64,000 nt of DNA, taken from Hypanus sabinus. Taxonomy: Eukaryota. Under the pieces are notes generated by a model that did not search any database, was not told the origin of the DNA, and saw nothing but the letters and a program-made list of their open reading frames with translations. The translations under genes were made by a program, and so were the position numbers. Positions 5,921 through 62,959 of this stretch are shown here, piece by piece (the stretch's first letter is position 1; every line of letters begins with the position of its first letter). The stretch covers positions 135,532,001-135,596,000 of the forward strand of contig NC_082708.1 in assembly GCF_030144855.1 (NCBI RefSeq), read 5' to 3'.

Positions 5921-6134
5921 AGATGCTATTGTCTGGTTTATTATTTGCCAGCATCATATGTCTTAAATCCACCTTATATCTGTGGGAAAACTTCAGTAGA
6001 TTGATCTCAAACCATGATGTACAATCTTTGGAGCTCATATAATTAGTATGTATAATCATTTTCTCAGTGTAGTCACAATATCAAATGATATCATTGAGAG
6101 TAAATAGTCAGTAAGCAATTGGGAAACTTTTGCC

Positions 6135-6362
6135 ATAGAGCCATTGAGTAATACAGCACTGCGACACAGAAACAGGTACTTCAGACTATCTAATCTACAA
6201 CAACTATTATTCTTCCTAGTCCCACTGACCTGCACTTGGAAGCTGAAATGCCCTTCCCATCCATGTACCTAACAAAACTTTGCTTAAATGTTGTAATTGA
6301 ACCCACATCCACCACTTTTGCTGGCACCTTGTTCCACACATGCAGCACTCTGAGTGAAGAAG
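6135..6362 (-). mobile_element. CR1 3' end fragment
   Basis: Reverse complement resembles the CR1 3' UTR and tail; similar to the tails at 27127 and 30665. Confidence 0.6.
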
Positions 6363-6631
6363 TACCCCCCCCCCACCCCCAGGTTCAACTTATATACTGC
6401 AACATGAGGCATTTAACACTTACAGGCAGTTCTACTATGTAATGGTCATGTATCTCATTGTCTTCCTGCATTGCACTTTCTTTGTAACAACAACACTATA
6501 TTTTTCATTTTGCTATTGCCTTCCCCTTATACTACCTCAGTGTACTGATGTGAAATGATCTGTATGGATACCATGCAGAATAGTTTTTCACCTTACCTCA
6601 GCGCAGCAAACGGCACAATAACAAAGCAATT

Positions 6632-9055
6632 ATGGCGGTTGAACTGAAGAAGTATTTTGTATCAGTCTTCACTGTGGAAGAAACGAGCAGTATGGTGGAA
6701 GGCCCAGAGAGCAGGGGTCAGAAGTGTGCAAAGTTGCCATAAATAACAAGAAAGCTCTTGAGAAACTGAAAGGTTTGGTGGTAGATAAATCACCTGGACC
6801 AGATGATGTACACCCTAGGATTCTGAAAGAGATGGTTGAAGAGATTGTGGGGGCATTGATAATGATCTTTCAAGAATCTAAATGCAGGTCAATGGGACTA
6901 GGCAGAATAATGGTTGTTGTAGATTAGATAGTCTGAAGTGTCTGCTTCTGTGTTGTAGTGCTGTATTATCCAACGGTTCTATGGCAAAGGTTTCCCAGTT
7001 TCTTACCGATTACTTACTCTCAATGATATCATTTGATATTGTGGCGACACTCTGCGAAAATGATAATACATGATAATTATGAGTGCCAAAGATAAGCAAT
7101 GGCTTATAGTTCTGGAGACGTTCTGGACGACTGGAAAATGGCAACTGGTACTCCATTCTTCAAGTAGGGAGAGAAGCAGAAGAAAGGAAATTATAGGCCA
7201 GTTAGTCTGATCTGAGTGGTTGGGAAGATGTTAGAGTTGATTGTAATGGATGTCGTTTTCGGGTACTCGGAGGCACACGATGTAATAGGTCGTTGTCAGT
7301 ATGGTTTCCTTAAGGGAAAATCTTGCCTAGCAAATCTGTTGAAATTCTTTGAAGAAATAAGCATGATAGATTTTCAGAAGACCTTTGACAAGGTTCCACA
7401 CATGAGGCTGATTAACAAGTTAAGTGTTGCACAGGGGCACTGGGAGCAGACCCAAATGCAAGACACAGACAGTGAAGTAGTATGAACAGGACTATGTTTA
7501 TTAAGAATACTAGGGAAGCCAAGGAGCGAAGACAAAATATCAACCAGGACGTGAATGTAGAACAACAAATTGGAAAACCTTGACTAGGACTTACACTTGA
7601 CTGAGAACTCAGGTCTTGGCAGGAACGAAGTACCTGGGTTTTGACTTGGCTCTTGACTTAGAACTTGGGCTTGATTTGACCAGGACACAGGGCACAAATG
7701 CAACCTAGAATCCACAATACTCAGCAGCTCCAATAATGGTCCAGACTTACCACACTGGCTGAGGTTACGTGTTTCTGGTAACAAGCTTCCTGGTGTGGGT
7801 TTCTGACAGGGACAGTCCAACAAAGGAATAGCTGGACCCCTGAGCTACTTATGTTGCAAGTCCGAAATGAGGATCAGCTGCCTCAATAAAGGCACCTAAC
7901 GGAACAAGGGAAAACAGAAACAACTGGAATACAGAATCCATGGACTGGACCATGACAGTAAGAGCCCATGGTATTACAGGGAAGATACTAACATGGATAA
8001 AGCAATGGATGATTGGCAGGAGGTAAAGACTGGGAATAAAGGGAGCCTTTTCTGGTTGTCTGCCGGTGACTAGTGGTTATCCCCAGGGTTTTGTATTGAG
8101 ACCACTTCTTTTTATGTTGTATGCCAATAATTTGGATGATGGAATTGATAGCTTTGGTGCAATGTTTGTGGATGATACAAAGATAGGTGTAGAGGCAGGT
8201 AGCTTTGAAGAAGTAGAGAGACTACAGGAAGACTTCACAGGTTAGGAGAATGGGCAAAGAAGTGACAGATGGAATACAGTGTTGGGAAGATTATGGCCGT
8301 GCATTTTGGTAGAAGAAATGAAAGGATAGACTATTTTCCATATGGAGAGAAGATTCCAAAATTTGAGGTGCAAAAGGACTTAGGAACCTGTGTGCAGTAT
8401 TCCCTCAAGGTTAATTTGCAGGTTGAGTCTGTGGAGAGGAAAGCTAATGCAATGTTAGCATCATTGCAAGAGCAGGGATATAACGTTGAGGCTTTATAAA
8501 GAACAGGTGAGGCCTCACTTCAGGTATTGTGAGAATTTTTGGTCTCCTTATTTTAGAAAGGATGTGCTGAAACTAGAGAGGGTTCAAAGGAGGTTCACAA
8601 AAATGATTCCAGGATTGAACGGCTTGTCATATGAAGAGCGTTTGGCTCTGGGCCTGTATTCACCAGAATTCTGAAGAATGAGGGGTGACTTAATTGAAAC
8701 CTATCAAATGGTGAAAGGTCTTGATAAAGTGGATAGTTCCTTTGGTGGGAGAGTCTGGAACCAGAGGATACAGCTTCAGAATATAGAGTTGTCCTTTTGA
8801 AAAGGAGATGAGGAAGAATTTCTTAGCAGGAGTGGTGAACTTGTGGAACTAATTGCCACAGGCATCTGTGCAGGTCAAGCCTTTATAACTATTTCAGGCA
8901 GAAGTTGATAGATTCTTTATTCATCAAGGCATGAAGGGATATGGGAAGAAGACAAGAGATTGGAGCTGAGAGGAAAAATGTTCTGCCATGATGAAATGGC
9001 AGAGCAGACTCGATGGGTCAAAAGGCCTTTTTCTGCTCCTATATCTTATGGTCTT
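6632..9055 (+). mobile_element. CR1 LINE, 5'-truncated ORF2 pseudogene, interrupted by an inverted templated insert (6877-7093) and a solo LTR (7425-7957)
   Basis: ORF-track pieces 'KSPGPDDVHPRILKE', 'YGFLKGKSCLANLLKFFEE', 'DFQKTFDKVPH', 'LERVQRRFTKMIPG'; ends in a 'tcttatggtctt' tail. Confidence 0.9.
7425..7957 (-). mobile_element. Solo LTR (533 bp)
   Basis: TG...CA termini (tgttgc...atgaca); 5-bp TSD ttaag (7420-7424) / gtaag (7958-7962). The CR1 reading (LINKL|RAHG) resumes across it. AATAAA lies on the minus strand; internal 'gactt' tandem units. Confidence 0.85.
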
Positions 9056-9219
9056 CTCAATGAGCCCTTATTTCCTACTATTTTGAGTTCCCAATACTCT
9101 TTTATTCTTTTACTCTTATCCCATTTACTCTTTATGTTATCAGGAGTTAAAAAATGTTTATTTTTTTTTACAAGCAAGCACTTTTGGAGTAAAATTCATT
9201 CAGACCCAAGAAAGAGTTA

Positions 9220-11022: not shown

Positions 11023-11025
11023 CCT

Positions 11026-11287
11026 TTCTGCATAATTGCTCAAAGAGTTGAACCGCATGTGCCTGTAACGAGAGCTGTGTAACATATTTCCTTCTACCTT
11101 AGGCCACAAACTTATCTATCACTCCTGCTGTGGACACTTTCTGGAGATCCAAGATCCGTATGCTCCATGACCGCTGGACTAAGAGTATAAGTGTAGGAGG
11201 GGACTATGTTGAAAAATAAATGTGCTAGGTTTTCTAAAATTGGCTCCTTCTACAATAGGCCATGAACTTATCAATCACCCTATCGTA
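11026..11287. mobile_element. Right half of a mariner-type MITE (same family as 59398-59824)
   Basis: Two copies of the TIR block 'ccttctaccttaggccacaaacttatc(a)atcac'; ends 'tcaccctatcg' followed by TA. Confidence 0.8.
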
Positions 11288-12834: not shown

Positions 12835-13449
12835 TGTAACGCTTACACAACAGGCTGGTGTATATCTAGGGGACAATTACAGCCACCTGCCAAACCCCAC
12901 CTCCCGTATACATGTATGCTGTGGAGTACACGCTACTGCAACATTGCACACACAATATCAAGCTCACACCAGGTAGGGGTACAGAATACACTTTATAAAT
13001 CTTACTAGAACTAAGTGATTAATAACGATACAATATATATGAAGGGAAAGAGAATAAAGAAAAGGTGCTAAAACTTATCAAATTTCAGTCAATTTGTGCA
13101 CATTGTTGGAGCTCAATCATTGAACCGTTCGACCCCTCTTCGCTCTCCTCCAACCTCCACGACCACCCGAAGTGATCAACCGAGCAGTGCCGCAAGCATC
13201 CACCTTCTTCGCCGTCTTCTCCCCGACTCCCAAAAAGACCGCACCATCCCAGCTCCCAGACCCACAAGAGAAAATAACATCCAACCCAATTGGTTAATAA
13301 ATGAATACAATTCTCATTATCAGGAACTTTAACCTAAACAAGCTTTGAGAATGCTCTGCAAGAAAACACTCCCTCACCAGTTAGCATAACAAAGAAGCAG
13401 TTTTACTTTTAACAAACAAAGAAGCCATTTTGATTACATACCTAGTACA
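12835..13449 (-). repeat. 3' LTR of element A (615 bp)
   Basis: First 197 bp align to 19289-19485 with about 22 substitutions (hand count), many at CpG; abuts the PPT. Confidence 0.92.
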
Positions 13450-13486
13450 TTCTCCCCCCATCAACAAAAGTCATGCCCTCATGACA

Positions 13487-16400
13487 TTACCAGAGTTCCC
13501 CAATGCTTCTTGCAAAACACAAAACCCAACCCAGGTGCAGAAAGCAGTGACATAACTTCCCAGGGTGGTAGAGATCACACTCAGTTCTCCCGGCGCTGCA
13601 TAGGTCAATTGCTCTGGGGGTGCCTACTTCTCTGAGACCTCTGTACCTCCTCTGCCGACTCTTCTGGCTCAGACACCATGGGGGACACCCCAGATCAACC
13701 TGTCTGATCCTTACCCTCTCCCTCACTGGGATCCCTCTTCACCTGTGAACCGTTTGTCTCGCGTTCAGGTTCCACCCTCTCTCCCCCCAATGTCAGCTGC
13801 ATCTCAGTCTGCCCATCAACACCCTCATTCCTCTCACCTAACTCAGTAGGGGAAAGGCCAGAAGCCTCTTCTTCCGGTACTGGAGCATTAGCAAATGGAA
13901 ACAGGGGCCACACATCTGAATCGTTGTCTCCTGAAGCAGTATCCCTTTCCGGGGTAAGGACCGGTCCCATATCTTCCGCAGTGGGCTCTTCCCTTGCCCC
14001 ACACCCTCGCAGAGTCCTCATACTAGGCGTAACCTCCCACTCTGGCTCTTTATCCACCTGCATCGCTTGACACAGGGGCAGCAAGTGGTCCCAATCGAGT
14101 ACCTTGACAGGCCCCTTCCCATCCTCGGGTTTCACCTGGTTAACAAGTAGATTCGGCATCTGGCTCTCTATCACATAGGGGGTGGCCATCCATTGATCTG
14201 CCAACTTGTGCTTACCAGAGAGTCCTAAATTCTGTATAAGGACCCAGTCACCCGGCAATAGTTGGGCAAACTTCACTTTCTGATCATATCTCCTCTTATT
14301 CCTCTGATTCTGCTTTGTGGCCACTGCCTCAGCCAACTCGTATGCCCTTTTCAACTCTCTCCTCATATTGGACACATACTTCAGATAGTGCTTCGAAGGT
14401 AATTCACCCACCTCAGTCCCAAAGCACAAGTCAATGGGCAACCTCGCTTCCCGCCCGAACATCAGATAATAAGGCGAGTACCCTATAGCATCATTGCGAG
14501 AACAATTGTAACAGTGAACCACATGCCTGATGTGCCGACTCCACTTACTTTTCTGACCAATCTCCAGAGTCTCGAGCATATCCAACACTGTCCGGTTAAA
14601 CCTCTTGGGCAGAGGATCACCCTGCAGGTGATAGGGTGTAGTCCTGGATTTCTCAACCCCAAACATAGTCAGTAATTCATGGAATAGCCAACTCTCAAAG
14701 TCCTGCCCCGAATACTATGGATCCACCTGGGGAGGCCATAATGAACAAAATACTTCTCCCATAACACCTTCGCCACGGTAGTCGTTTTCTGATCCTTAGT
14801 GGGGAACGCCTGAGCATATCGTGTGTAGTGATCCGTGGTGACTAAGACATTCGTGGTGTTGTTGGTGTCTGGCTCAATCGACAGGAAATCCATACACACC
14901 AGGCCCATGGGTCCCTCACTCTGCGAGTGCGACAGAGGAGCCACTGACGCCGGCAGGGTCTTCCTCCTGATGCAACGGCTTCACTTTCTACAGTATTCTT
15001 CAACCTCCCCCCTCATCCGGGGCCGGTAGAACCGGTTCCATAGGTCTTTTCCACCCCTGGAATCATCATGAAAGGCCTGGAGTACAGTCTGCCGATACTT
15101 CTCAGGCATGACCAGCTGCCAACACCGGGGGTGGTCCGGAGGCGGCGTGACCCAGTACAAGACTTGGTTCATCAACTTTAACTGAGGCCACTCCTTCACT
15201 AACAGAGGCATGGACAGTGTTTTGCCTTCTCTGCCCATGCCACATCCCCCTTCTCCACTGCTCTCCACACAGTGTCAAGGCCCGGGTCATTTTGCTGAGC
15301 AGCTGCCACTTCCCCCGGACTTAGTTCCGGCAACTGTTTAGTCTTCAGTGCAGTCAGGTCACAGTAAACATCATCAAAAGACCCCAAGGGGTCCACTGCT
15401 CACTCCGGCCTTCCCCTTCCCTCGGCCTTCACAGTGATAGCAAACTGACACATGGCTTTCACTCCAGGGCAGGAATGCTTTCCCACCCCTCGTCCATCTC
15501 CGGTTCCCCAGCCTCCCGACGTGACAAAGCATCCGCATCACCATTCTTGCTTCCTGGCCGGTACTTCAGGCTGAAATCATATACCGATAAAGCTGCCAAC
15601 CACCGATATCCTGTGGCATCCAGTTTCACCGAAGTCAGGATATAAGTGAGAGGATTGTTATCCATTCTCACCTCAAACTTGGCTCCGTATAAGTAATCGC
15701 TCAACTTGTCCACCACCGCCCATTTCAGCGCCAGGAACTCCAACTTGTGAGTGGGATAGTTCATCTCAGATGGTGACAAGCTTTGGCTGACAAACGCCAT
15801 CGGCCTCAATTCGTTGCCCTGTTCCTGGTACAGGACAGCCCCTTGATCCTCTTGGCTGGCATCAGTGGGCAGCACATACGGCTTCTGGGGATCGGCAAAA
15901 GCCAACACCCACTGGTCAGTGCCCGCTTCAGAAATTGGAACGCCTCTTCATATTTATCATCCCATCTCGACCCAAAAGGCTCCGCCGGGTTCCAGTATCC
16001 TCCTGTGTCTTGCCCCCGGTCCCTCTTCCTTTTTCTCCCCACCGGTGGATAGCCACACAACAGCTGAGTCAACGGGTGACACATTTTAGTGTATCCTTTC
16101 ACGAGATCGCCTTCTGGAGTCTCGGCCAGGTGGTCACAGCGTTTATCTTAGTCGGATCAGTAGCCACTCCCTCTCGCAAAATTATGTGGCCAACATAGCT
16201 GACCGACAACTTGCAGAAATGGCATTTGTCCAGCGAAAGTTTCAACCCTTCCTCCTTGAGCCGGCTTAACACCTTCAGCAGCCTCTCCTCAGGTTCCTCC
16301 AAAGTCGATCCAAGCACTATCAAATCGTCCAGATACACCTGCACATTGAACGGATTCATATCCCCCACAGTCCTCTCCATGAGCCTATGGAAGGTGGCTG

Positions 16401-17839
16401 GGGCTCCCGACATGCCTTGGGGCATTTGCTCGAACTGAAAGAACCCCAGCGGGCAGATAAAGTCTGTCTTCTCTTTATCACCCTCACTCATCGGGAACTG
16501 GTAATATTCACTCCTCAAATCCAGCACACTGAACCACTTCGCTCCACTCAGACAGGCCAGCGCGTCTTCGACCCTCGGGACGGTATACTCGTCAGGGACA
16601 GTTTGCCGATTCAAAGTCCTATGGTCAATGCACATACGCACCCTCCCGTTCTTCTTCCAAGCCACTACTATTGGGGACACATAGGGGCTTTGGGATTCAG
16701 CGATGATCCCAGCTTCCTTCAGCTCGCACAAGTGCTGCCGCACATTGTCCACATCTGCCAAGGCCAGTCGCCATGACCGCTCTCTAAACGGGGTGTCCTC
16801 CTTCACTCCGATGGTGTGGTGGGAGCTTTTGGAGCAGCCCACATCAAACTCACCCTGAGAAAGGACATCTTCCAACTTCAACATTTTCTCCACCAGCCTG
16901 CGTTTCCACTCCAGAGAGAATCCCCAAAGTTAAAAGCCTCAGCGGTCAGCTCCCCTCGGTTTTCCAATCCATCCCCTTTAGTGGCCCTCACCGGCGCGCC
17001 AGACATTACCGTCACCAGGAACAGATGTGCCAGCGGTATCCCTCTCTTCGCAGTGTTCCTGACACTCATGGCTATCCGCCTCGCATGTATCACTGAGGGC
17101 CTCTGCACTACGGGCCTCACCAGCACCCCAGCCGGAAATCGTGTCTCCTCCTCAAGATCGCCTGGGGTGTCTACTAACAGGGCTTCGCCTGCCGGCACTC
17201 CGGGGAATCTGGGGGTCCCCATCACTTGTGCCACCTCCCCTGGTTGGATCACCTTGGGCCTCGCCTGTGTACACCACACCGTCACTTGTTTACACTCCGG
17301 ATCCAGCCCTTGGGGGGGTCACCCCCTTCTTCAAATACCACCCGAAACACTGGATGCACTGAGAGGGTCTCCAGAAATTTCTCCCCCCCCCCCCCACTCT
17401 CCTTACAGGCTCCCAGGAGCCATCGCACAAATGGGGAGTTAGTCCCCACCAGGAGGGAAGCACCACCGGTTTCCACCAGGTCCGGACAAACCAACACCAG
17501 CGTCTCAATAGCTTCAGACACTCCCACATCGCCCTCCAAGAATTCCAATTTCACTGACAGGTACCCATCGTACGGGTAATCACCCTTGCTCACACCCCAA
17601 ATCTACAGTGCATTAAATGGGGTTACGGGCAAGTGCTTTAGATATTTGTTGTAGAAAGACCGGTACAATAAGGTCACCTGCGATCCCGTATCGAGAATGG
17701 CTTTTGTGTAAACTATTATCCATAGGCACACGCTGGAAAGGGGTCCCAGCCGAACCGGAATAAAGGCTTGGGCTTTCAGTGGTCCCCTGGCTGATTTCTG
17801 GGAACGTTTTCCTCCAGAGACTCCAGTCCATTCCCTCAC
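13487..17839 (-). pseudogene. pol: pol pseudogene of element A (protease, RT, RNase H, integrase; many frameshifts and stops)
   Basis: 'AILDTGSQVTLL' (PR, 17603-17839); 'WFSVLDLRSEYYQ...VYLDDLIV' (RT, 16099-16893); 'TDAS...LEFLALKWAV...DADALSR' (RH, 15459-15908); 'CMDFLSI', 'TTPYHLQGD...RFNRT' (INT). Confidence 0.93.
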
Positions 17840-19216
17840 TGAGTCTCTTCTAAGTGTCCCGACACCTCTTCCTTCTTAGTCGCCCGGGGGGGTTGCCATC
17901 TGTGGGATGCCTTGTCTCTCACAATCCCTCGAAAGTGTCCCTCCTCCTCACAGCTGTAGCACACCCTTGGCTGCTCACAGCTCCGCTGGAAATGCCCCTC
18001 TTTCCCACAGTTAAGGCACACGCTACCCGCCACTCCTCCACTCCCAGCCCATTGTACGGGCTGCCCCCTGGAGGGGGTACTTTCCCTATCCTTCCCTTCA
18101 AACGGGGAGTCCCTACTCCCCTGGGCCCCTTGGGTTTCTCTGTCTTCAACCTGGCCACCACTTCCTGTATCGCTGAGGATCGCTCCCGGTGGCCCGAGCC
18201 TCTTTTCCTCTCTCTTCCTCCCACACCTCTCTAATCAGCTGCCCAAATGATGGAGGGGGGCCATTCCTATAAGTCTGCCAGATACTCCATGCCACCTTGT
18301 CCTCCTCCAGGGAACCACTAAATATCTGACTCATCCTCACTCTAGCCACATCATCCGCCTTCAGTACCCCCCAGTGCCGCAACCCAGTAAGCATTCCCTT
18401 TATCCGAAATATGTACTCGGAGAGCTTTTCCCCTCTCCATTGCTCCATGTGTTGAAACTCTGCTAAAAGCAGCCAGGGATCCCCTGACAACCAAAACGCT
18501 CCCTCCAAAACTTCTATACACTCCTCCACTGAAGCCCCAGGCTTTTCAGCTTCCAACTCTCGGACTGCTATGGCTGCCGAACCCCTCAAATTTCCCACCA
18601 ATTGCTGTCTCTTCTCCTCATTCGAGCCTGGCCTCTCCTCTAACATCAGGGACGTATGCTCGATCCAGGTCTCATAGTCAACCTCCTCGTCCGGAATAGG
18701 CGTGGCTCCAGAGAACACCCCCAGCTTCAGCCGTGGTCTTTCGGCCACTCCCACCAGAGAGTTAAGGGCGGCTGCCAGCTCCGAGGGCTCCACCCTACCC
18801 GGGGGTGGGCGGGGGGGGGGGGCCTGGCCAAGCATTCCCACTCCAACCCTGCTTTACTGGTGATGGGCACCTCCTCTGGGGTCAACTGTCAACTCTAGCT
18901 GCTCCTCCGGTGTCTCCTCACCCTTGTCTTCCAAGAGGGTGTGGAGTCCCCACGGCACCGCCTACCCTGGACACTGACCGTCGCTGGCAATTCCAATATC
19001 CTGACATCAGCACTCGTGCGAACCAACACCCGACTTCTTTCCATCTCTTTACTGCACCTCCGTGCTACCAGTTCTATCGACCCCATACATTTGACCAAAT
19101 TCAATCCCTGCACTAACGCACCATCAGAAACCCGAAAATCCACCACACTCACCATACTCGCAATGCACCGGTACATCTTCTAAATCGCACCAGCTTACGA
19201 TCTTATCTCTGTCCAT
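17836..19216 (-). pseudogene. gag: gag pseudogene of element A (PNMA/Ma-like capsid plus two CCHC knuckles)
   Basis: 'LKLGVFSGATPIPDEEVDYETWIEHT' capsid motif (18146-18841); 'CLNCGKEGHFQRSC' and 'CYSCEEEGHF' (17836-18033); split across several frames. Confidence 0.88.
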
Positions 19217-19651
19217 CTCCGCACTATTGGGCATGCGCGATTCACACAGCTACTGAAAATTCAATCCCCGACACAAGCACCCCACAAATGTAATGCTTAC
19301 ATGACAGGCTGATGTATATCTAAGGGAAAATTCCAGCCACCCACCAAACCCTGCCTCCTGTATACATGTATGTTGTGGAGTACACACTACTGCAACATCA
19401 CACACACAATATCAAGCTCACACCAGGTACGGTTACAGAATACACTTTACAAATCTTAGTAGAACTAAGTAATTAATAACAATACTGTAGCGGTGTGCTA
19501 CACGCAGCGCTAAAATTACGACACGGAGTCAGCAACTGCAGTCGAAGGAAAAAACGTTATTCGAAATCCTCAGCCTCACTTTTAAGCCTCCCTCAACCTG
19601 CCCCCTGTGGCGCAGAGGCTCCAAAGCTCTGTGCTCGCAAACCCCCGTAGG

Positions 19652-22600
19652 CTATCTAATTGTGAGCCAGTTCGGATGTGCCAGGAAAAGGGTCGCCACA
19701 TAACACCCCCCCCAGAACCGGCGATACACCCCCCAATGTCCACAGTCTGGGCCAGAACCTGCTTGGGAGGTCGGCCTCTGCCGAGGTGCCGGAAACTCGG
19801 CCGGTTGCGCCAGGTCCACATGGGCCGGTTTGAGGCGGTCCACCGTGAAAACCTCCTCTTTCCCCCCAACGTCCAGCACGAACGTGGACCCGTTGTTCCG
19901 GAGCACCATAAACGGCCCCTCGTATGGCCGCTGCAGCAGTGGCTGATGCCCGCCCCTTCGTACAAACACAAACTTACAGTTCTGCAGGTCTTTGGGTACA
20001 CAGGTCAGGTTCCGCCCGTGCTGTGAAGTGGGTATGGGGGCCAGGTTACCGAGCTTCTCGCGTAGTCTGCCCAGGACTGTTGCGGGATCTTCCTCTTGCC
20101 CCCATGGGGCTGGTAGGAACTCCCCAGGGATGACCAGGGGCACGCCGTATACCAACTCGGCCGACGAGGCATGCAGGTCGTCCTTGGGCACTGTGCGGAT
20201 GCCGAGTAGGACCCAGGGAAGCTCATCCGCCCAGTTGGCTCCTCGCAGGCGGGCCATGAGGGCCAACTTCAGGTGACGGTGGAAACGCTCCACTAGCCCG
20301 TTCAACTGTGGGTGGTAGGCAGTTGTGTGGTGCAGCTGAGTCCCCAAAAGGCTGGCCATAGCTGACCACAGGCTGGAGGTGAACTGGGCACCTCTGTCGG
20401 AGGTAATGTGGGCCGGCACACCAAAGCGAGATATCCAGGTGGTGATCAGGGCTCGGGCGCAAGATTCGGAGGTGGTGTCAGTGAGCGGAACCGCCTCTGG
20501 CCATCTTGTGAACCGGTCCACGATAGTCAGGAGGTGCTGCGCTCCACGCAACACTGGCAGGGGGCCCACGATATCCACATGAATGTGGTCGAAACGCCGG
20601 TGGGCGGGATGGAACTGCTGCGGTGGGGCTTTGGTGTGCCGCTGCACCTTGGCCGTCTGGCAGTGCATGCACGTTTTGGCCCATTCACTGACCTGTTTGC
20701 GGAGTCCGTGCCAAACGAACCTGCTGGAAACCATCCGGACAGTTGTCCAGATGGAGGGATGCGCCAAGTTATGAATGGAGTCGAAAACGCGGCGCCGCCA
20801 GGCTGTCGGGACGACGGGACGGGGCTAGCCGGTGGCGACGTCACAGAGTAGGGTCCTCTCACCCGGGCCTACGGGGAGGTCCTGGAGCTGCAAACCGGAG
20901 ACTGCGGTTCTGTAACTCGGAATCTCCTCATCCGCCTGCTGCGCCTCTGCCAGTGCCTCAAAGTCTACCCCTTGGGAAAGGGCATGAACGGTAGGGCGAG
21001 AGAGCGCATCCGCCACGACATTGTCCTTACCCGAGACGTGCCAGACATCCGTCGTGTATTCAGAGATGTAGGACAGGTGGCGTTGCTGGCGGGACGACCA
21101 GAGGTCGGACGCTTTCGTAAATGCAAAGGTAAGCGGTTTGTGGTCCGTGAATGCGGTGAAGGGCCGACCTTCTAGGAAATACCTGAAATGCCGGATTGCC
21201 AGGTAGAGCGCCAACAGTTCCCGGTCGAAAGCACTGTACTTGAGCTCGGGTGGCCGCAAGTGTTTGCTGAAAAACGCCAGGGGTTGCCAGTGACCTGCGA
21301 TGAGTTGCTCCAGCACCCCACCGACTGCTGTGTTAGATGCGTCCACTGTGAGGGCGGTAGGGGCGTCCATTCTGGGATGTACTAGCATTGCGGCGTTCGC
21401 CAAAGCTTTCTTCGTTTGAACGAAAGCGGCGGCGGACTCCTCGTCCCAGGTAATGTCCTTGCTCGGACCTGACATCAGGGCGAACAGGGGGCGCATGATC
21501 CGGGCAGCTGAAGGGAGGAAGCGGTGGTAGAAATTGACCATACCTATGAATTCCTGAAGGCCTTTGATCGTGGTGGGTCTGGGGAAGTGGCGGACCGCAT
21601 CTACCTTAGCGGGCAGAGGGGTTGCCCCGTCTTTAGTAATCCTGTGGCCCAGGAAGTCAATGGTATCGAGTCTGAACTGGCATTTGGCGGGGTTGATTGT
21701 AAGACCGTACTCACTCAGTCGGGCGCAGAGTTGACGGAGTTGGGACAGATGCTCCTGACGACTGCTGCTGGCTATGAGGATGTCGTCCAAATAGATGAAC
21801 GCGAAGTCCAGGTCCCGTCCCACCACGTCCATTAACTGCTGGAACGTCTGTGCGGCATTCTTCAGGCCGAACGGTATGCGGAGGAACTCGAAAAGGCCAA
21901 ACGGGGTGATGAGAGCCGTTTTGGGGACATCATCAGGATGCATCGGGATTTGATGGTACCCTCGGACGAGGTCTACCTTGGAGAAGATCCGTGCGCCGTG
22001 CAGGTTTGCTGCAAAGTCCTGAATGTGCGGCACAGGGTAGCAGTCCGGTGTGGTAGCTTCGTTCAGCCTGCGGTAGTCGCCGCACGGTCTCCAGCCTCCC
22101 GTCGCTTTGGGCACCATGTGCAGGGGGGAGGCCCGTGGGCTGTCGGACCGCCGGATGATCCCCAATTCCTCCATCCTCTGGAACTCCTCCTTCGCCAGTC
22201 GGGGCTTGTCCGGGGGAAGCCACCGAGCGCGGGCATGGGGGGGGGTCCCTGGGTCGGGATGTGGTGCTGTACGCCGTGTCGGGGCATGGCCGCTGTGAAC
22301 TGCAGTGCCAGAACCGATGGGAAATCCGCCAGGACCCTGGTGAAGTTGTTGTCGGACAGCGTGATGGAGCCGAGGTGAGGGGCTGGCAACTGGGCTGTAC
22401 CCAGAGAGAACGTCTGAAAGGTCTCGGCGTGTACCAGTCTCTTCCTGGGCAGGTCGACCAGTAGGCTGTGAGCCCACAAAAAATCCGCACCCAGAAGCGG
22501 TTGGGCTAAGGCGGCCAGTGTAAAGTCCCACGTGAACTGGCTGGAGCTGAACTGTAGCTGCACCTGACCATAGGTCCTTACTGTGCTGCCGTTCACGGCC

Positions 22601-22752
22601 CTCAGGGGGGGACCTGGTGCCCTGCTGTGGGTGTCGTAACTCGTCGGAGGTAAAACGCTGATCTCGGCACCAGTATCGACCAAAACCTGGCGTCCCGACC
22701 GTCTATCCCACACATACAGGAGGCTATCCCGATGGCCAGCCACCGTAGCCAT
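19652..22752 (-). pseudogene. pol: pol of element B (PR-RT-RH-INT) with one frameshift near 22240 and one premature stop at 20825
   Basis: '[11 protein letters not shown]'; '[14 protein letters not shown]...IYLDDILI'; 'VDASN...RELLALY...ADALSR'; integrase 'HP...CMHCQ...HVDIVGP...SDRG...LVERFHR' and a GPY/F-like 'RPYEGPF'. ORFs 20825-22531 and 19652-20767 are in the same frame. Confidence 0.95.
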
Positions 22753-23440
22753 CAGCGGCAGCCATCAGTGGCGTTTCCCAGGAACTTGCAGGGCGGGCGA
22801 CAACAGCGAGCTTCTGCGCCCCACCACTGGTGGTAGAAGCACCAGTGTTCGTGGGCCGGGGGTTGGCGGGCTCTGCGGCCGGGCCTGGACTGGTTTGCTG
22901 CTGGGAGCGTGGCTGGGAGATCTGTGCGATGGACGCCCCGCTCACCTTTTTGGCGTTCCACAGCAAGTCCGCCCGGGCTGCCACCTTCCAGGGGTCACTG
23001 AAATCCGCATCGGACAGCAGCAGGCGTATGTCCTCATGCAGCTGCTCCAGGAATGCCTGCTCAAACATGAGGCAGGGTGTGTGTCCGTCGGCTAGAGACA
23101 ACATCTCATTCATTAAAGCCGATGGAGGTCTGTCGCTCAAGCCATCCAGGTGCAGTAAACGGGCAGCCCGCTCGCGCCGTGAGAGTCCAAAAGTCCTGAG
23201 GAGCAGGGCTTTGAATTCCGTGAACTTGCCGTCTGCCGGGGGCGACTGTACGAACTCCGCGACCTGGGCCGCTGTGTCCTGGTCGAGGGAGCTCACCACG
23301 TAGTAGTAGCAGGTGTCTTCTGAGGTGATCTGGCGAACGTGGAATTGGGCTTCGGCTTGCTGGAACCATAGGTTCGGTCGCTGTGTCCAGAAACCCGGCA
23401 GTTTCAACGAAACCGCATGAACAGAGGCGGCGTCGCTCAT
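22752..23440 (-). pseudogene. gag: gag of element B with CHCC knuckle; one frameshift near 22860
   Basis: 'VSLKLPGFWTQRPNLWFQQAEAQF' N-terminus; 'CFYHQWWGAEARCCRPPC' (Cx2Hx9Cx3C) lies in the shifted frame 22752-22961. Confidence 0.9.
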
Positions 23441-23994
23441 TTCTGGTCCAAAAATCATTTGGACCGTTGGGGTCACCAATTGTAGCGGTGTGCTACACGC
23501 AGCGCTAAAATTACGACACGGAGTCGGTAACTACAGTCGAAGGAAAAAACTTTATTCGAAATCCTCAGCCTCGCTTTTAAGCCTCCCTCAATCTGTGGTT
23601 TTTATTGTAATATTGCATATTTTGCACACCTGATCACGACTTTTGACTTCTGATCATGACTGTGTAATCTAATTCAACATTTCCACATCTTCAGCCATTC
23701 CAATTTTATACCTTACATCACCAGTATTCGGTATTTTTTTTCTCTTTTCTTATGATTTTTTGGCTTTCATTCATCTGTTGTCATGGTCGCTCCAGATACA
23801 CATACATTAAACTCAATGTTGACACCAGCAACATTTGTGTCATCTCGTGCTCTCCACCCACCTTTGGATCTTTCACTTTGGTCAAGCTTACTTCATTTCT
23901 TTTCCATTCTAGATGAAATTTTGGCATTTTGAAACATTCTCTGCTCCTCTCCCTATGAGCGCTGCTTGACAAACAGAACATTTTCTAAAACAGC

Positions 23995-25270: not shown

Positions 25271-26295
25271 CCATAAGACCATAAGACATAGAAGCAGAAT
25301 TAGGCCATTTGGCAAATTGAGTCTGCACTGCCATTTCATCATGTCTGATCCAATTTTCCTCTCAGCCCCAATCACCTGCCTTCCCCTTGTATCCTTTCAT
25401 TCCCTGACCAATCAAGAATCTATCAAACTCTGCCTTAAATATACATTAAAACTTGGCCTCCACAGCTGCCTATGGCAAAGAATTTTACATATTCACCACT
25501 CTCTAGCTGACAAAATTCCTCCTCACCTCCGTTCTAAAAGGATACCCCTCTATTCTGAAGCTGTGTCCTCTGGTCTTAGACTCTCCCACCACAGGAAACA
25601 TCTTCTCCACATCCATTCTATCAAGTTCTTTCACTATTCAATAGGTTTCAATTAGGTCACCCTAATTCTTCTGAATTTTTGTAAATACAGGCCCAGAGCA
25701 ATCAAACATTCTTCATATGACAAGCTATTCAATCTTGGAATCATTTTCCTGAACCTCCTTTTAATGGTCTCCAGTTTCAGCACATCCTTTCTAAAATAAG
25801 GAGCCCAAAACTGCACACAATACTCCAAAATGAGGCCTCAATGGTACTTTATCAGTTTCAACATTTCATCCTTGCTTTTGCATTCTAGTCCTCTTGAGAT
25901 GAATCCTAACATTGTATTTGCCTTCCTCACCATTAACTCAACCTGAAAATTAGCCTTTAGGGAATCTTGCACAAAGACTCCCAAGTCCCTTTGAGCCTTA
26001 GCTTTTTGTTTTTTCTCTCCATTTAGAAAATAGTCAATCCGTTCATTTCTTCTACCAAAGTGCATTATCTTACACTTCATGGCACTGTATTGCATTTGCC
26101 ACTTTTTTGCCCTTTCTCCTAGTCTGTCTAAATCCTTCTGTAGCCTCTCTACTTCCTCAAAACTACTTACCCCTCCACTTATCTTCATATCATCTGCAAA
26201 CTTTGCAAAAAAGCCATCAAATCCATCATTCACATATAATGTTAAAAATTTTGGACGCATCACAGGCCCCTGTGACCACTAGTCACCAGCAATCA
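25271..26295 (-). mobile_element. CR1 LINE 3' fragment
   Basis: 'FAKFADDMKI...LQKDLDRLGE' (25838-26263); tail 'ccataagaccataagac'. Confidence 0.9.
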
Positions 26296-26325
26296 TCTTG
26301 CATGCCAGGTAAATGAAATATTCCA

Positions 26326-26535
26326 CACACAAAATGCTGGAAGAACTCAGCAGGTCAGACAGCAACCATGGAAATGAACAAAGAGTCAACATTTCGGGCC
26401 CAAGGTCAAACCCTTGATCTCGGCCAGAAACATTGATTGTTTGCTCATTTCCATGGATACTGCCTATTCTGCTGTTTTCTTCCACATTGTGTATGTTGCA
26501 TTGCATTTCCAGTATCTGCTGTATTTCTTGTGTGA
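26326..26535. mobile_element. Palindromic Penelope-pLTR-derived mini-element
   Basis: 'acacacaaaatgctggaagaactcagcagg...' followed by its degenerate reverse complement; axis near 26410. Confidence 0.65.
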
Positions 26536-27126
26536 AAGAAATGTGCCATTATTTAGGAACTTCTGGTCATGTCCTGAAAGTGGAACTGCATGTTGTAAAA
26601 AAAAGTGTCCATCACTGCTCTGAGCAGAAATAGTTAAATGAAAAGAAAAAGGTCATTCATTAACTCTAATCTGCAGAATATCATATTTTAGACTGATGAA
26701 AGATCAGTAAAGCATTGACTATTTTCTCACCACAGATTCTCCAATAAACTGCTGTATTTCATGTCACCAGTACCTGAAGTTTTAAACTGTGATTTCCAAA
26801 AGGTTCACCAGGCCTTTCTCTTTCCATATGCAGGTGACCTTCTGTGTGGTTCTAGCATTTATAGGTTACAAACACTGACTTCTGCACAGCCCAAACATAG
26901 GAATATGCATTTGGGAGACTGCCAGTGTGGATGTGTCTGCTGCTGCAGGCATCTGCCACCACATAGAGACTCTGTAGGTGGCTGCAATTCCAATTTGAGA
27001 ACTGTTCAGTTTATGAACAGTTCAGAGGAGCAGAAACCCAGGGACAACCTCTGTTCCTTTCCCTAATGAATGTGGTGTCAACTTATTTTCTCTTAATAAT
27101 TCCAAATCCTTCCAACTGAAGTTTTA

Positions 27127-28910: not shown

Positions 28911-29039
28911 TTGTTATCATAACATTACCACAGCAGTGAAAAAGGTATTCAAGCCACCAAGCCTATGTTGAAAAGCATTATATTTGCCATGTCGGATATA
29001 TTATTTTCTGCTATGAGCCCTCCCTTTTTTTTAATTGTT

Positions 29040-52310: not shown

Positions 52311-52470
52311 TTGAATTTTCCTGCTTCCATCTCTTTTTTTGAAAGGAACTGAGAATTGAACAGGTATTTCAATTTTTCTTTGCTTATATTTCAAAATAAT
52401 AAAGAAAAACTGAATTACCTGTTCAATTCTTGTTTTCTTTCAAAAAAGAGATGGAAGCAGGAAAATTCAA
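52311..52470. repeat. 160-bp fold-back palindrome
   Basis: 52311-52381 pairs with 52401-52470 (ttgaattttcctgcttccatctc...gagatggaagcaggaaaattcaa) with few mismatches and a short AT-rich loop. Confidence 0.9.
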
Positions 52471-53837: not shown

Positions 53838-56380
53838 TATATCTTTAGAAAGAGATGACATAGGGTCAGAGAATGTTGAATCTTTGTGGGTGGAGTTAAA
53901 AAATTGCAGGGGTAAAAGAAAAGCATTATGGGAATCATATATAGGCCTCTAAATAGTAGCCAAGATGTGAGGTTAAGATTGCAAAGGGAGCTGGAAAAGG
54001 CATGTAAAAAGAGTAATGACACAATTGTAAATGGGGGACTTCAATATGCAAGGGGATTGGGAAAATCAGGTTGGTGTCAGATTGCAAGAGAGGGAATTTG
54101 ATGAATGCCTACAAGATGTCTTTTTAGAGCAGCTCGTGATTGAGCCTACTTGGGGAAAGACTATCTTAGGTTGGGTATTGTGTAAAAACCCAGATCTTTT
54201 AAGGGAGCTTAATGTAAAGGAACCCTTAGGAGCCAGTGATCATATCATGATTAGATTCATACTGCAACTTGAGAGTGAAAATCATGAGTCAGATGTATCA
54301 GTATTGCAATGGAATAAAGGTAATTACAGAGGGATGAGAAAGGAGCTAGCTCTGGCGGATTGGAGGAGAATATTGGTGGAGATGATGGCAGAGCAGAGAT
54401 GGCTGAAGTTTTTGGAAATAGGTCACAAGGAGCAGGATAGATATGTCCCATAGAGGAAAAAGTTCTAAAATTTCAAGGGGTAGGCAACCGTGGAAGACAA
54501 AACAAGTTAAGGACTGCTTAAAAGCCAAGGAAAGGGCATATAAGGTAGCAAAAGTGAGTGGGAAGTTGGATGATTAGGAAGCTTTTAAAATCCAACAAAA
54601 GGCAACTAAAAATGTTTTAAGTAGGGGAAAGATGAAATATGAGGGCAGACTAGCCAATTATATAAAGCAGGATACCAAAACTTTTTCAGTTATATAAAGA
54701 GAAAAAGGGACGCAAGAGTTGATATTGGACCACCGGACGAGATGGGGGACAAAGAAATGGTAGATGAACTTAATGGGTAATTTGCATCTGTCTTCACTGT
54801 GGAAGACACTAGTAGTGTGCCAGAGGTCCGTGATTGTCGGGAGCAGGGGTGAGTGCCATTGCTATTACAAAGAAAAAAGTGCTAGGCAAACTTAAAGGTT
54901 TTAAGGCAGATAAGACAACTGGGCCAGATAGCCTACATCTCAGAGTCTGGGGAGTGTTGCTGAAGAGTTAACAGATTCATTTGTCATGATCTTTCAAGAA
55001 TCACTTGATTCTGCTGTGGTCCCAGAGGACTGGTAAATTGCAAATGTCACTCCACTCTTTAAAAAGGGAGGAAGGCTAAAGAAAGGAATTTCTAGGCCAG
55101 TTAGTCTAACCCCAATGGTTGGGAAAGTGTTGGAATCTATTATTAAGGATGAGGTTTCGAGGTACTTAGAGAATAAAGATAAAGTAAGTCAAAGTCAGCA
55201 TAGTTTCTGTAAAGGGAAATCATGCCTGACAAATCTGTTTCTGTTCTTCTAGGAAATAACATGCTGGGTGGATAAAGGAGAGGCAGTGAATGTCATTTAT
55301 TTGAATTTTCAGGCAGCCTTTGATAAGGTGCCACACATGAAGCTGCTTAACTAGATAAAATCCTGTGGTGTTACAGGAAAGATACTGGCATGGTTAGAGG
55401 AATGGCTGACAGGCAGGAGGCAGCAAGTGGGAAGAAAAGGGGCCTTTACTGGTTGGCTGCCAGTGACTAGCAGTGTTCTTCAGGGGTCAGTATCAGGACC
55501 TCTACTTTTCATATTGTTTGTCTATGATTTAGATAATGGAATGGATGGCTTTGTGGCAAAGTTTTCAGATGATACGAAGATAGGTGGAGGGGTAGGAAAT
55601 GCTGAAGAAGCAGTGCATTATCTAAATGGGGAAAAGGTTCAAACATTGGAAATGCAGAGGGACTTACAAGCCCTCATGCAAGACTCCCAGAAGGTTAATT
55701 TACAGGTTGAGTCTGTTTTAAAGAAGGGAATTGCAATGTTGGCTTTTATTTCAAGGGGAATAGAATATAAAAACCAGGAGATAATAGTAGCCTTTATAAG
55801 ACACTAGTCAGACCGCACTTAGAGTACTGTACTGTCAACAGTTTTGGGCCCCATATCTCAGAAAAGATGTGTTGCCATTGGAGAAAGTCCAGAGGAGGTC
55901 CATGAGGATGATTCCGGGAATGAAGGGATTAGCATAGGAGTATTTGGCAGCTTTGGGCCTGTAATCACTAGAATCTAGAAGGAAGTGTGGGGATCTCAAA
56001 TCTCTACTAAATTTTGAAAGGACTAGATAGGGTGGATGCGGAGAGAATATTTGCTATGGTGGGGGTGTCCAGAACTAGAGGGCACATCCTCAAAACCGAG
56101 GTGTGTCCGTTTAGAACAGAGATAAGGAGGAATTTTTTTAAACCAGAGAGTAGTAAATCTGTAGTACGCTCTGCCACAAAGTGCAGTGGAGGCCAAGTCC
56201 TAGTGTATATTTAAGGTGGAAGTTTATCATTTCCTGATTGGGTAGGGCATCAAAGGATATGGCAAGAAGGCCAGCTTATGGGGTTGAATGGGATCCAGGA
56301 TCAGACATGATGGAATGCTGGAGCAGACTTGATGTGCTGAATGGCCTATTTCTGTACCTATGCCTTATGGTCTTATGGTC
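53838..56380 (+). mobile_element. CR1 LINE ORF2 pseudogene (APE to 3' tail), same subfamily as 48011-50681
   Basis: 'MGDFN', 'PLGASDH', 'FVAKFSDDTKIGG'; tail 'cttatggtcttatggtc'. Confidence 0.92.
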
Positions 56381-58032: not shown

Positions 58033-58094
58033 ACAATCTCTGCAGATTTTCCAAATTTTCTGCATAGGGTCAGTACCCTGGCGAAAACTATACC

Positions 58095-59397: not shown

Positions 59398-59824
59398 TGA
59401 GTGGTGATTGATAAATTCATGGCCTAAGGTAGAAGGAGACAATTTTAGAAAACCTAGCACATTTATTTTTCAATATAGTCCCCTTATATATTTACACACT
59501 TAATCCAGCGGTCGTGGAGCATACGGATCTTGGACCTCCAGAAAGTGTCCACAGCGTGAGTGATTGATAAGTTCATGGCCTAAGGTAGAAGGAGATGAGT
59601 TATTAATTTCAAACTTTCTGCATAACCACTCAAAGAGCTGAACTGCACGTGCATGTAATGAGAGCTGTATAACTCATCTCCTTCTACATTTACACACGAC
59701 CACTGTACTAAGTGTGTAAGTGGACTAAGTGGACTAAGGGGACGATGTTGAAAAAATAAATGTGCGAGGTTTTCTAAAATTGACTCCTTCTACCTTAGGC
59801 CACAAACTTATCAATCACCCCTCG
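59398..59824. mobile_element. Compound mariner-type MITE
   Basis: TIR '(c/t)gag(g/t)ggtgattgataa...ggcctaaggtagaaggag' at both ends and repeated internally at about 59548; TA on the left, CA on the right. Confidence 0.85.
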
Positions 59825-60600: not shown

Positions 60601-60829
60601 CATAAGCCTTAGTGACTCAAGTTCTTGGCCAGGTTCTTCTTAATTGTTATGCCTCCACCAACTTTGACAGTACAAATGCAGCTTGGCTTTAAAACTGTTT
60701 CTTCAGATCACTTTAAACCTATACCTACTAGTTGATACATAATTGCCAGGGGAAAGGTTTCTTACTATCTTCCCTAACTATGTTTCATCATTTTGTATAG
60801 CTCTATCAAGGAAAACAAGCTCAGATATT

Positions 60830-61150
60830 CAGTAATTAAGGACCACCCCCCCCCCCCCAATCACCCAGGACATGCCTCCTCCCTTCTCACTTTTACCATC
60901 AAGGAGAAAAAGTACAGGAGCGTGAATACACATACTCAACATTCCAGGGACAGCTTCTTCCCCTCTGCCATCTGATTTCTGTATGGACAAAGAACCTATG
61001 AACGCTACCTCACCATCTTTCTTTTGCACTACTTAACATATATATTCCTTATTGTAATTCATTTTTTTTATTATTATGTATTACAGTGTACTGTGGTTGC
61101 ACAACAACATATTTCACAGTAAATGCCAATCATATTACACCTGATCCTGA
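60830..61150 (+). mobile_element. Rex1/Babar-like LINE 3' end
   Basis: 'IKD...HPGHA...YRSVNTHTQHSRDSFFPSAI'; 'ctgatcctga' tail. Confidence 0.65.
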
Positions 61151-61885
61151 TGTCTTGTATTCTTTCTTTATTACCATCTTTTGGAATCTTTGAACTTGTA
61201 CACTAATTCCACTTGCTTCATCAGTAATCACTCGGGTCTTACTCTATATGTCTATCCTTCTTAAACCCCCAAAATGCAATACCTCATGGTTGTCAGAATT
61301 ACATTCCATTGGCACCACCACGTATGAATAACTTCAACTGAAATAGATTTCTAGGCTAACCACAGTCTGACAGTGGATTCGTGGTTGAAGAAACTGGATG
61401 GACAGAAGAACCCAGGACAAATTGAAGAAATTTGTTTCTGTTGAAGTCCCTATGGGCCAAATGCACAGGAATTGCCACTCTCCAAATATTCACTTCACGA
61501 CCGAGCTTCCACACTACACCCTCTCCCTGAATATGCCGGGACTTCTAATTTCCAGTTGACCCACAATCATTTTATACCTGATTTCAGGATCATCAGATGG
61601 ATCACTGCCTTCTTGAGAGAAGTTGCATTTAAATGGAGCCCTGTAGAAGTTTTACATCCCTAAACATTTTCAATGGGTGCTTCACCAATTGCTGGTCTTA
61701 TTAATATCATTTCTAACCCCAGTATAAACTGTTGTCTGTGCACAATGGATAAAATAAACAGAATGTGTTAGATACGTGGGTTAGGACCAAAAAAACATGG
61801 TTGGAATCACTCAGGAAGTTTATTCACTGTGTAGAAAATCAAACTTGCAAAAATGAGTGAAAATAGTGAAAAGAAGAATGCCAAT

Positions 61886-62892
61886 ATTTACAAAATGATA
61901 TCTACTAGTTAACACAAGAATACCTTTTACTTATTCTTGTCCAGTGTGAACTCTTCACAGCCCCCATCTGTCTCTCATACTGAGAGTGAAAAGCCCCCCC
62001 CCCTTTTTTAGACACTAAGATATACCATTTCTAAGTACTAACAAAGTTAACCTAAAACTACACATGAATTACTATATAATGCATGGCATGGTGCAATTAC
62101 AATCAGACATTAAAATAAGTATACAAGCAACATACCGTATATATATATTTACATATCCCCATTACTAAAGATACAGATTATTCTGCCATGTGTGGCAGAA
62201 AAGGCACCATAAAGTCAACCCAAGTGCATTAATTCAGTTTAGAATTAAACTAAACTTTGATGTTTGACTCTGAATGTATGTAGCAATGCGGAGGAAAAAC
62301 GGGGTTAATTATGAGGCTGTACTGGGAAAGACATTGAAGTGTGTACACACGATGCAACAACAGCAGAATGACAAGGCAATATTTGTGTGTGAATGAATGC
62401 AAGAGTGTAATGAGTGTGGCTACTGAGTGCTCCTCATCATAGAATGAATAAAATGATAAGTTTCTCTGCCGAGAAAGCAATTATGAGAAAAACGTAGCTA
62501 GACTTGATTGAAGAAATGGATATACATTTTAACTGCGCAAAATAAGTTTTTAGTTTTATGGTTGTTTCCACATAATTTGAAAATTTCTCAGTAAAGATTA
62601 CTTATTAGAGAAGAATAACATGTGTGATACATTGGCAATGAGTAGCAGTATATACATAGCAAACATAGTAAATAGAGGTAATTAAACCTCTATGCCATGC
62701 ATCATATACTAATTCATGTGTAGTTTTAGGTTAACTTTGTTAGTACTTAGAAATGGTATATCTTAGTGCCTAAAAAAACGGGGGCTTTTCACTTTCAGTA
62801 TGAGAGAGAGATAGGGGCTGTGAGGAGTTCACACTGGACAAGAATAAGTAAAAGGTATTCTTGTGTTAACTAGTAGATATCATTTTGTAAAT
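61886..62892. repeat. Long inverted repeat: arms 61886-62089 and 62692-62892, spacer about 600 bp
   Basis: Arms align over about 200 bp with about 7 substitutions plus a homopolymer length difference (hand count); no TSD. Confidence 0.95.
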
Positions 62893-62959
62893 CCTTGAAA
62901 CAACCATTCCTAAAATAAATTATGTGGGCTTGTTGATGTAGGAATCAACAAATAGGCAC

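Follow-up and report, generated by a model that had tools for sequence, protein, structure and literature searches.

The stretch analysed here, a window of 64,000 nucleotides on contig NC_082708.1 of the stingray Hypanus sabinus (assembly GCF_030144855.1, positions 135,532,001 to 135,596,000 of the forward strand), is a mosaic of mobile elements, including fragments of CR1-type long interspersed nuclear elements (LINEs) and a Gypsy-type element with long terminal repeats (LTRs). Four tracts of DNA within this mosaic recur nearby in reverse orientation, and they are called pairs 1 to 4 below, in order of position (all coordinates count from the first letter of the window). An earlier note on this DNA had described them as unique local sequence, copied in inverted orientation without a target-site duplication (TSD), and had attributed them to templated DNA repair. 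In our judgement they are probably four separate mutational scars and not the products of one element or system, and at least three of them would have arisen when a polymerase departed from its template, read a neighbouring stretch of the same chromosome as reverse complement, and returned.

The four inverted pairs

The window was compared with itself by two independent routes, a seed-and-extend scan and blastn, and all four pairs were recovered by both at the coordinates first proposed. Pair 1 (6024-6240 and 6877-7093) has arms of 217 nt, which are 85.4% identical when gaps are counted and 87.0% identical over aligned bases, with 636 nt between them. The arms of pair 2 (27398-27486 and 35865-35953) agree at 88 of 89 positions (98.9%) and are separated by 8378 nt. 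Pair 3 (52311-52470) is a palindrome of 160 nt with two 71-nt arms, 91% identical over aligned bases, around a loop of 18-19 nt, and pair 4 (61886-62100 and 62678-62892) has arms of 215 nt, 92% identical with gaps and 94.8% without, on either side of 577 nt. A tract of 71-217 nt is thus reverse-complementary, at 87-99% identity, to a template on the same chromosome, the distance to the donor being 18 nt (pair 3), 0.58 kb (pair 4), 0.64 kb (pair 1), or 8.4 kb (pair 2). Expressed as Kimura two-parameter (K2P) distances, the arms have diverged by 0.146 in pair 1, 0.011 in pair 2, 0.092 in pair 3, and 0.054 in pair 4.

Shuffle controls rule out a chance origin of the pairs, because 14 local inverted 14-mers were observed in the window against about 0.1 per block-shuffled window. 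Among exact local matches of at least 14 nt that lie no more than 1 kb apart, 14 seeds were inverted and two were direct, and the local direct duplicates in the window are all parts of CR1 or LTR elements. No third copy of any arm was found within the 64-kb window for pairs 1 to 4. The claim that the copied DNA is unique can therefore be stated at this range for pairs 1, 3, and 4, and it extends further only for pair 2, through contig depth in related rays.

A different account holds that the pairs belong to dispersed repeat families: pair 4 would be a 1-kb non-autonomous transposon with terminal inverted repeats (TIRs) of 215 nt, pair 3 a miniature inverted-repeat transposable element (MITE) or the stub of a fold-back element, and pair 1 two 5'-truncated copies of CR1. 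We regard it as unlikely, although it has a clear footing in the mobile-element mosaic of the window and in the similar geometry of pairs 1 and 4, both with arms of about 215 nt and a spacer of about 0.6 kb. The lack of a third arm copy in 64 kb speaks against it, since abundant families leave many fragments per window, and so does the lack of any match to the hammerhead or another Rfam family. The remaining evidence on this account differs from pair to pair and is given with each of them, beginning with the pair for which template switching is best documented.

Pair 2: an 89-nt patch replacing CR1 sequence

The best case of the four is pair 2, in which a low-copy patch has replaced part of a CR1. 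The acceptor is an AT-rich patch of 89 nt (27398-27486, minus orientation) inside a minus-strand CR1 (27131-28850), and the donor lies 8378 nt downstream on the plus strand (35865-35953), between flanks without CR1 similarity. An upstream open reading frame (ORF) of the host CR1 carries an RVT_1 domain, and the copy sits in the C-terminal coding part; the statement that two of the copies lie inside CR1 coding sequence is borne out here and in pair 1, the right arm of which lies in ORF2. In an alignment of eight CR1 3' regions the patch takes the place of about 90-97 nt that code for ...LIEVYK...TRGH near the C-terminus of ORF2, and since this sequence is missing at the patch, pair 2 is a replacement and not a pure insertion. 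The overlaps at its junctions amount to 0-3 nt, as measured against a reconstructed pre-event CR1 sequence.

Copy number beyond the window was estimated from Logan contigs of four sequencing runs (X15, X16, X17, and X5), which were mapped to 26200-29199 at 80% likeness. The public runs found hold at most 36% each of the sampled words of the window, and these four come from relatives and not from the source animal, with unique contigs 2-4% diverged in three organisms and about 10% diverged in one. Pairs 1 and 3 probably predate the separation of rays at such distances. Contigs, not raw reads, were used, and depth serves as a proxy for copy number. Single-copy depth, taken from unique bins, was about 16 in X15 (16.2), about 10 in X16 (9.87), about 5 in X17 (4-5), and about 17 in X5 (16.6), and the CR1 bins reached a summed contig depth of 1-4 million in each run. 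At position 27437 inside the patch the depth was 15.1 in X15, 26.8 in X16, 9.06 in X17, and 16.1 in X5 (one contig), so that the 89-mer stands at 1-3 times single-copy depth in the contigs of all four related rays. About 500-730 contigs of the CR1 family per run depart from the window exactly at 27490, and they continue as the CR1 consensus ...CTCTATCAGGTCACC, the antisense of GDLIEVYKMM. It follows from the low depth in the patch and from the CR1 consensus at 27490 that the 89-mer has one to three copies and is not dispersed, and that the CR1 site of the window is probably the derived one. For pair 2 the account by repeat families is thus refuted.

Two further candidates were rejected. Partial matches to the patch at 33688 and 924 do not extend, and these together with the depth of 1-3 copies exclude membership in a weak AT-rich family. 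Gene conversion between inverted CR1 copies does not apply, as neither the donor nor its flanks resemble CR1.

The CR1 family of the host (27131-28850) is matched by about 200,000 contigs per run at 80% likeness or more and by about 14,000 at 99% or more, and it is hugely abundant and in part very young in the related rays.

Assembly artefacts, in the form of fold-back chimeric long reads or mis-joined repeats, would be another explanation for some of the pairs. The youngest pair, with 99% identity, does lie inside a CR1 of very high copy number, which is hard for assemblers, and its acceptor junctions are not bridged by a contig among those listed. Fold-back artefacts have identical arms and no spacers, whereas three of the pairs are 5-15% diverged, with indels and with spacers of 18-640 nt, and the 89-mer of pair 2 also occurs in contigs from four other rays, two of which have it at about double the single-copy depth. 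An artefact is for these reasons extremely improbable.

Pair 1: a CR1 end and its flank inside CR1 ORF2

The donor arm of pair 1 (6024-6240, plus orientation) is composed of 109 nt of flanking DNA (6024-6132) and the final 108 nt of a CR1 on the minus strand (6133-6240). The acceptor arm (6877-7093, minus orientation) is the reverse complement of this whole tract and stands inside the ORF2 of a CR1, after ...IFQES; in the ORF translation it splits ORF2 after ...IVGALIMIFQES, just upstream of the reverse transcriptase (RT) domain. In the interrupted CR1, ...TTTCAAGAATC is succeeded by the insert, after which AAGCAATGGCTT... stands in place of the ACTTGATT expected of CR1, and the CR1 copies at 54925-55080 and 28480-28640 are uninterrupted at this point. 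The donor CR1 is colinear through 6240/6241 and on to about 6400, and it ends at CTATGG like the other copies. CTATGG marks the 3' terminus of CR1, as the other copies that align up to it cease to be alignable there, and the 109-nt flank has no other occurrence in the 64-kb window. The right arm reproduces the locus-specific junction between the CR1 end and its flank, which points to copying of that very locus.

Acceptor and donor can accordingly be told apart in pairs 1 and 2 from the position of the acceptor arms within CR1, as had been proposed; pair 3 offers no such feature. The proposed lack of a TSD stands for the units formed by pairs 3 and 4 as wholes and is not strictly true at the insert of pair 1, around which a degenerate 7-nt direct repeat (AAGAATC / AAGCAAT) had been missed, and at the inserted arm of pair 4, which is flanked by GTAAAT on both sides. 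The left junction of the pair-1 insert has in addition a 2-nt overlap, TC.

The variant of the repeat-family account that concerns pair 1 posits a CR1 source with a 109-nt transduced 3' tail, two copies of which would have landed in opposite orientation 0.6 kb apart; it shares the low standing of that account as a whole. It draws on the outer end that both arms share, on the shorter arm, which stops as a 5' truncation would, and on the 7-nt flanking repeat. Against it, the spacer and the arms are interleaved with two CR1 copies and are not one inserted unit, and the 109-nt tail is situated past the 3' terminal repeat at which copies of CR1 stop. Pair 1 was likewise rejected as a transposon unit, given that CR1 sequence flanks the right arm on either side and also leads on from the left arm to the spacer, and as a product of LINE twin priming, given that the inverted piece consists of the CR1 3' end and its flank and not of upstream CR1 sequence.

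A related proposal is that an RT made the patches, either through a jump of the CR1 or Penelope RT to a local transcript as template during target-primed reverse transcription or through RNA-templated repair of a nick from local nascent RNA. Both acceptors with a fixed direction (pairs 1 and 2) lie in CR1, and the insert of pair 1 begins in CR1 3' sequence, runs in the CR1 sense, and is accompanied by a TSD-like repeat. The host family of pair 2 has many near-identical copies (about 14,000 of about 200,000 contigs per run at 99% or more), and for this reason the patch, diverged by 1.1%, could date from the CR1 insertion itself. The CR1 location is, however, an ascertainment effect, because acceptors can be recognised only inside known repeats. 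In a genome of several Gb a retro-copy may land at any place, and donors 0.6 and 8.4 kb away favour neighbouring DNA. While CR1 copies end in ...CTATGG or in (TTTCTATG)n, the terminal repeat that primes CR1 reverse transcription, the insert of pair 1 does not end in that repeat but 109 nt beyond it, at ...CCAAAGAT. Pair 2 would need a jump out of an RNA and back into the same one, and pair 4 is wholly without LINE sequence. Taken together, these points make an RT origin of the patches very unlikely. With regard to pair 1 alone, the flanking repeat fits microhomology re-annealing and, equally well, target-primed retro-copying from a read-through transcript; this second reading has to explain the landing 0.64 kb from the source and the lack of a CR1 terminal repeat at the end.

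In the spacer of pair 1 (6440-6630), a stretch ending ...gtttttcaccttacctcagcgcagcaaacggcacaataacaaagcaatt borders immediately on the CR1 whose 5' end is at 6632. This stretch resembles what we take to be a common elasmobranch repeat tail. A 63-aa ORF that runs across the CR1-flank junction of pair 1 had no candidates in a family search, a result that is uninformative because such ORFs seem to lie outside the protein collection.

Pair 4: a junction with several templates

In pair 4, the donor arm obtained from the self-comparison (61886-62100, plus orientation) and a second template, a contiguous 21-nt segment of the spacer (62558-62578, plus orientation), have both contributed to an inserted block at 62674-62927 (minus orientation). 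The block consists of the filler agag, the reverse-complemented left arm (62678-62892), and further fillers and snippets. Past the right arm there follow, in order, cctt, GAAACAACCAT (62897-62907), tcctaaaat, and AAATTATGTGG (62917-62927). Both 11-mers are perfect reverse complements of the spacer segment, corresponding to 62558-62568 and 62568-62578 with their order swapped. The frequency of two or more 11-mer matches within this 68-nt flank was 0.14% among shuffles and 0.8% among real control windows, a statistic computed without demanding a common source for the two snippets. At pairs 1, 2, and 3 the search for further templated snippets gave only lone 9-10-mers, which are at chance level.

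The swapped snippets past the right arm identify this arm as the newly made copy. The hexamer GTAAAT (62668-62673) precedes the inserted block, at a 4-nt offset from the arm, and the same hexamer closes the arm (62887-62892); re-annealing of a nascent end at GTAAAT would leave such a flanking pattern. At the inner junction there is also a 7-nt mini-hairpin (ATAGAGG-taattaaa-CCTCTAT), which is partly missing from the left arm. Judged by the order of its segments, the junction is best read as several successive template switches in one event, a pattern that a TIR transposon does not predict and in which the swapped 11-nt snippets have no place. No direct repeat of at least 5 nt, such as a TIR transposon would leave, abuts both ends of 61886-62892. 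If template switching made pair 4, the pre-event locus should contain the left arm and the spacer, running ...CATAGTAAAT and then directly into the sequence at or beyond 62928.

Pair 3: a 160-nt hairpin

Pair 3 (52311-52470) has no strand assignment; its two 71-nt arms enclose a loop of 18-19 nt. The predicted DNA hairpin has a free energy of -58.9 kcal/mol (z = -14.8). Against Rfam it gave only sub-threshold matches to generic miRNA-hairpin models, for example mir-576 with 35.7 bits against a cut-off of 99. In the search for direct repeats of at least 5 nt abutting both ends of 52311-52470 none was found, which removes the TSD that a MITE would leave and goes against the repeat-family account here as in pair 4. 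On the features of the palindrome, an origin as a snap-back copy and an origin as a MITE-like element appear about equally open.

Mobile-element surroundings

Hairpin-shaped structures are also made by repeats in this window, and three further local inverted structures (59399-59823; 26325-26496; 45560-45850/47600-47889) belong to dispersed families. The structure at 59399-59823 is composed of two partial copies of a short dispersed family in opposite orientation, and a third partial copy lies at 11024-11280; the left copy at 59.4-59.8 kb is closer to the 11-kb copy (89%) than to its own neighbour (81%). Judged from these similarities, it is a local example of an inverted pair made by repeats. 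Two fold-backs, namely the palindrome 26325-26496 and the pair 45560-45850/47600-47889, share one motif of very high copy number: summed contig depth runs into the millions in the bin 26300-26399, and 26324 and 26364 are break points of contigs in their thousands. We take both to be Penelope-like, and they are probably decayed stubs of such elements, without an Rfam hammerhead match. The occurrence of these structures is in favour of the account by repeat families, and it is the reason why each of the four pairs was judged on its own. The arms of pairs 1 to 4 have no similarity to the abundant 26325-26364 motif. No hammerhead was found in the window by Rfam at E values up to 1, and on this and the lack of a long TSD a Penelope fold-back or hammerhead origin of the pairs was rejected.

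The window holds at least eight CR1-type LINE fragments, whose aligned 3' regions end ...CTATGG. Contigs of related rays run past the CR1 3' end at 27131-27134 as (CATAGAAA)n, which is the (TTTCTATG)n terminal repeat on the other strand. An exact 14-nt direct repeat, CTGAAGTTTTAAAC, occurs at 26774-26787 and 27116-27129, the second copy being no more than a base or two away from the CR1 3' end near 27131. The repeat may have arisen as the TSD of an insertion of 328 nt that separates its copies, or it may be due to chance. The tracts of pairs 2 and 4 are not CR1 sequence.

The Gypsy-type LTR element extends over about 12.8-23.6 kb (12835-23595) on the minus strand, and comprises an RT/RNase H ORF of 568 aa (20825-22531) and an integrase ORF of 371 aa (19652-20767). 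Its direct repeats are oddly split: the counterpart of 12835-13031 is 19289-19485 (89%), and that of the adjoining 19486-19600 is 23481-23595 (95%). The arrangement suggests two elements with an LTR in common, or else a solo LTR inside.

Template switching as the probable origin

In the reading that we consider probable, each pair records an event of its own. In pair 1, 217 nt from 0.64 kb upstream would have been pasted into CR1 ORF2. In pair 2, 89 nt from 8.4 kb downstream would have replaced about 90-97 nt of CR1. In pair 4, 215 nt from 0.58 kb upstream would have been copied first, followed by two 11-nt reverse copies of the spacer and short fillers, with several switches in a single event. 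Pair 3 would probably be a similar snap-back with a turn of 18-19 nt.

The mechanism would be microhomology-primed template switching at a stalled fork or in break repair, of the type known as break-induced replication mediated by microhomology (MMBIR) or fork stalling and template switching (FoSTeS). Switching of this type is the most likely process, the enzyme being our inference. For the short snippets, synthesis of the kind carried out by DNA polymerase theta (Pol theta) is possible, and it is indistinguishable from MMBIR/FoSTeS on these data. The mechanism put forward in the earlier note is therefore upheld as single events of template switching at pairs 1, 2, and 4, and its attribution to particular enzymes is not. 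That DNA and not RNA served as the template is likewise what we infer, DNA- and RNA-templated copying not being separable here.

Several points weigh against this reading. Copy number beyond the window was assessed for pair 2, and within 64 kb for pairs 1, 3, and 4. The proxies for the ancestral state, namely CR1 relatives and the family consensus, lack the tract at pairs 1 and 2, and pairs 3 and 4 have no proxy or outgroup. None of the contigs listed from the four runs bridges the acceptor of pair 2, because contigs break at high-copy CR1; no true orthologous empty site was seen there, and the acceptor junctions are thus without independent confirmation. In pair 1, the 7-nt flanking repeat and the shared outer end also fit a 5'-truncated retro-copy, and in pair 3 no feature fixes donor and acceptor. 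Microhomology at the junctions is short (0-6 nt) and in part ambiguous, the CR1 sequence before the insertion being itself a reconstruction. The tracts of 70-215 nt and the donor at 8.4 kb far exceed typical published template-switch events. Finally, hairpin-shaped insertions can be made by transposons, and fold-back structures of dispersed families are present in this window.

Comparison with known systems

The signature described for MMBIR is an insertion that is inverted relative to a nearby template and flanked by microhomology; it includes a replacement class and events with up to five templates, and has been reported from the human germ line (PMC8421209). The stingray pairs resemble these MMBIR-type templated insertions (MMB-TI) in being reverse complements of a nearby template and, as far as the reconstructed junctions show, in the short homologies there, and the class "with replacement" is similar to pair 2 as multi-template events are to pair 4 (Osia et al. 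2021, PMC8421209). They differ in scale, as the published calls range from 10 nt to the read length with templates within 100 bp (PMC8421209), whereas the stingray tracts measure 89-215 nt with donors 0.58, 0.64, and 8.4 kb away. They differ also in kind of data: MMB-TI are variants with a known ancestral allele, and the pairs are fixed old events (1-15% arm divergence) in one assembly.

In the four-point template-switch model, the reverse complement of a neighbouring fragment takes the place of the original one, and hairpins can arise in this way (Loytynoja & Goldman 2017, PMC5453318). The work on apes called 4017 events, with an expected copied length of about 10 nt (Walker et al. 2021, PMC7954356); in great apes there were about 2750 events per pairwise comparison, mostly of about 10 nt (PMC7954356). 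The hairpins or inverted repeats with unlike flanks that the model yields are comparable to pair 3 and to the replacement in pair 2 (PMC5453318, PMC7954356). In apes, however, about 10 nt are expected to be copied from within tens to hundreds of nt, and the stingray arms exceed this length by a factor of 7 to 20. Long-range or multiple switches were expressly left outside the use of the model.

Insertions made by Pol theta are mostly shorter than about 30 nt, and the stingray tracts of 89-215 nt call for more processive synthesis. The 11-nt snippets of pair 4, its 4-9-nt fillers, and its 7-nt mini-hairpin are like the snap-back insertions of Pol theta end joining (PMC7165422). Penelope-like fold-backs and LINE twin priming both yield local inverted structures too, but the arms of pairs 1 to 4 have no Penelope motif, hammerhead, or long TSD, and twin priming inverts the LINE's own upstream sequence, whereas the tracts of the pairs are flank or unrelated DNA. 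By these comparisons, the pairs appear to be long members of a known mutation class that match published events in kind, and they are not shown to be unusually frequent.

Significance

Read in this way, the pairs offer clear examples from nature of templated inverted insertion over long tracts. Pair 2 is a case of delete-and-patch with a donor 8.4 kb off, pair 4 records several switches in one junction, and both are much longer than the events that were used to train current template-switch models. Such events create hairpin-capable DNA from nothing, which is relevant to the birth of microRNA-like hairpins, to fragile sites, and to the formation of double-stranded RNA; the products here are hairpin-capable DNA, and no functional role is claimed for them. 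Templated inverted copies can also mimic TIR transposons and MITEs in repeat annotation.

The earlier note had suggested a process that acts persistently in this germ line. A wider claim of this kind would be that the germ line of the stingray, and perhaps of elasmobranchs, runs an unusually processive form of long-tract inverted template switching, with copies of 70-250 nt from up to several kb away, and that this pathway, at a density of tens of events per Mb, is a steady source of hairpin-forming DNA. We consider it rather improbable at present. When the great-ape figure (PMC7954356) is roughly scaled to 64 kb and to the age range of the pairs, about 0.3 events of any size are expected against the four long ones observed, a comparison limited by a window that was picked for its look, by three pairs whose single-copy status is unshown, and by ape counts that are conservative. 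If true, a persistently high rate specific to this lineage would bear on the evolution of DNA repair in slow-evolving vertebrates with large genomes.

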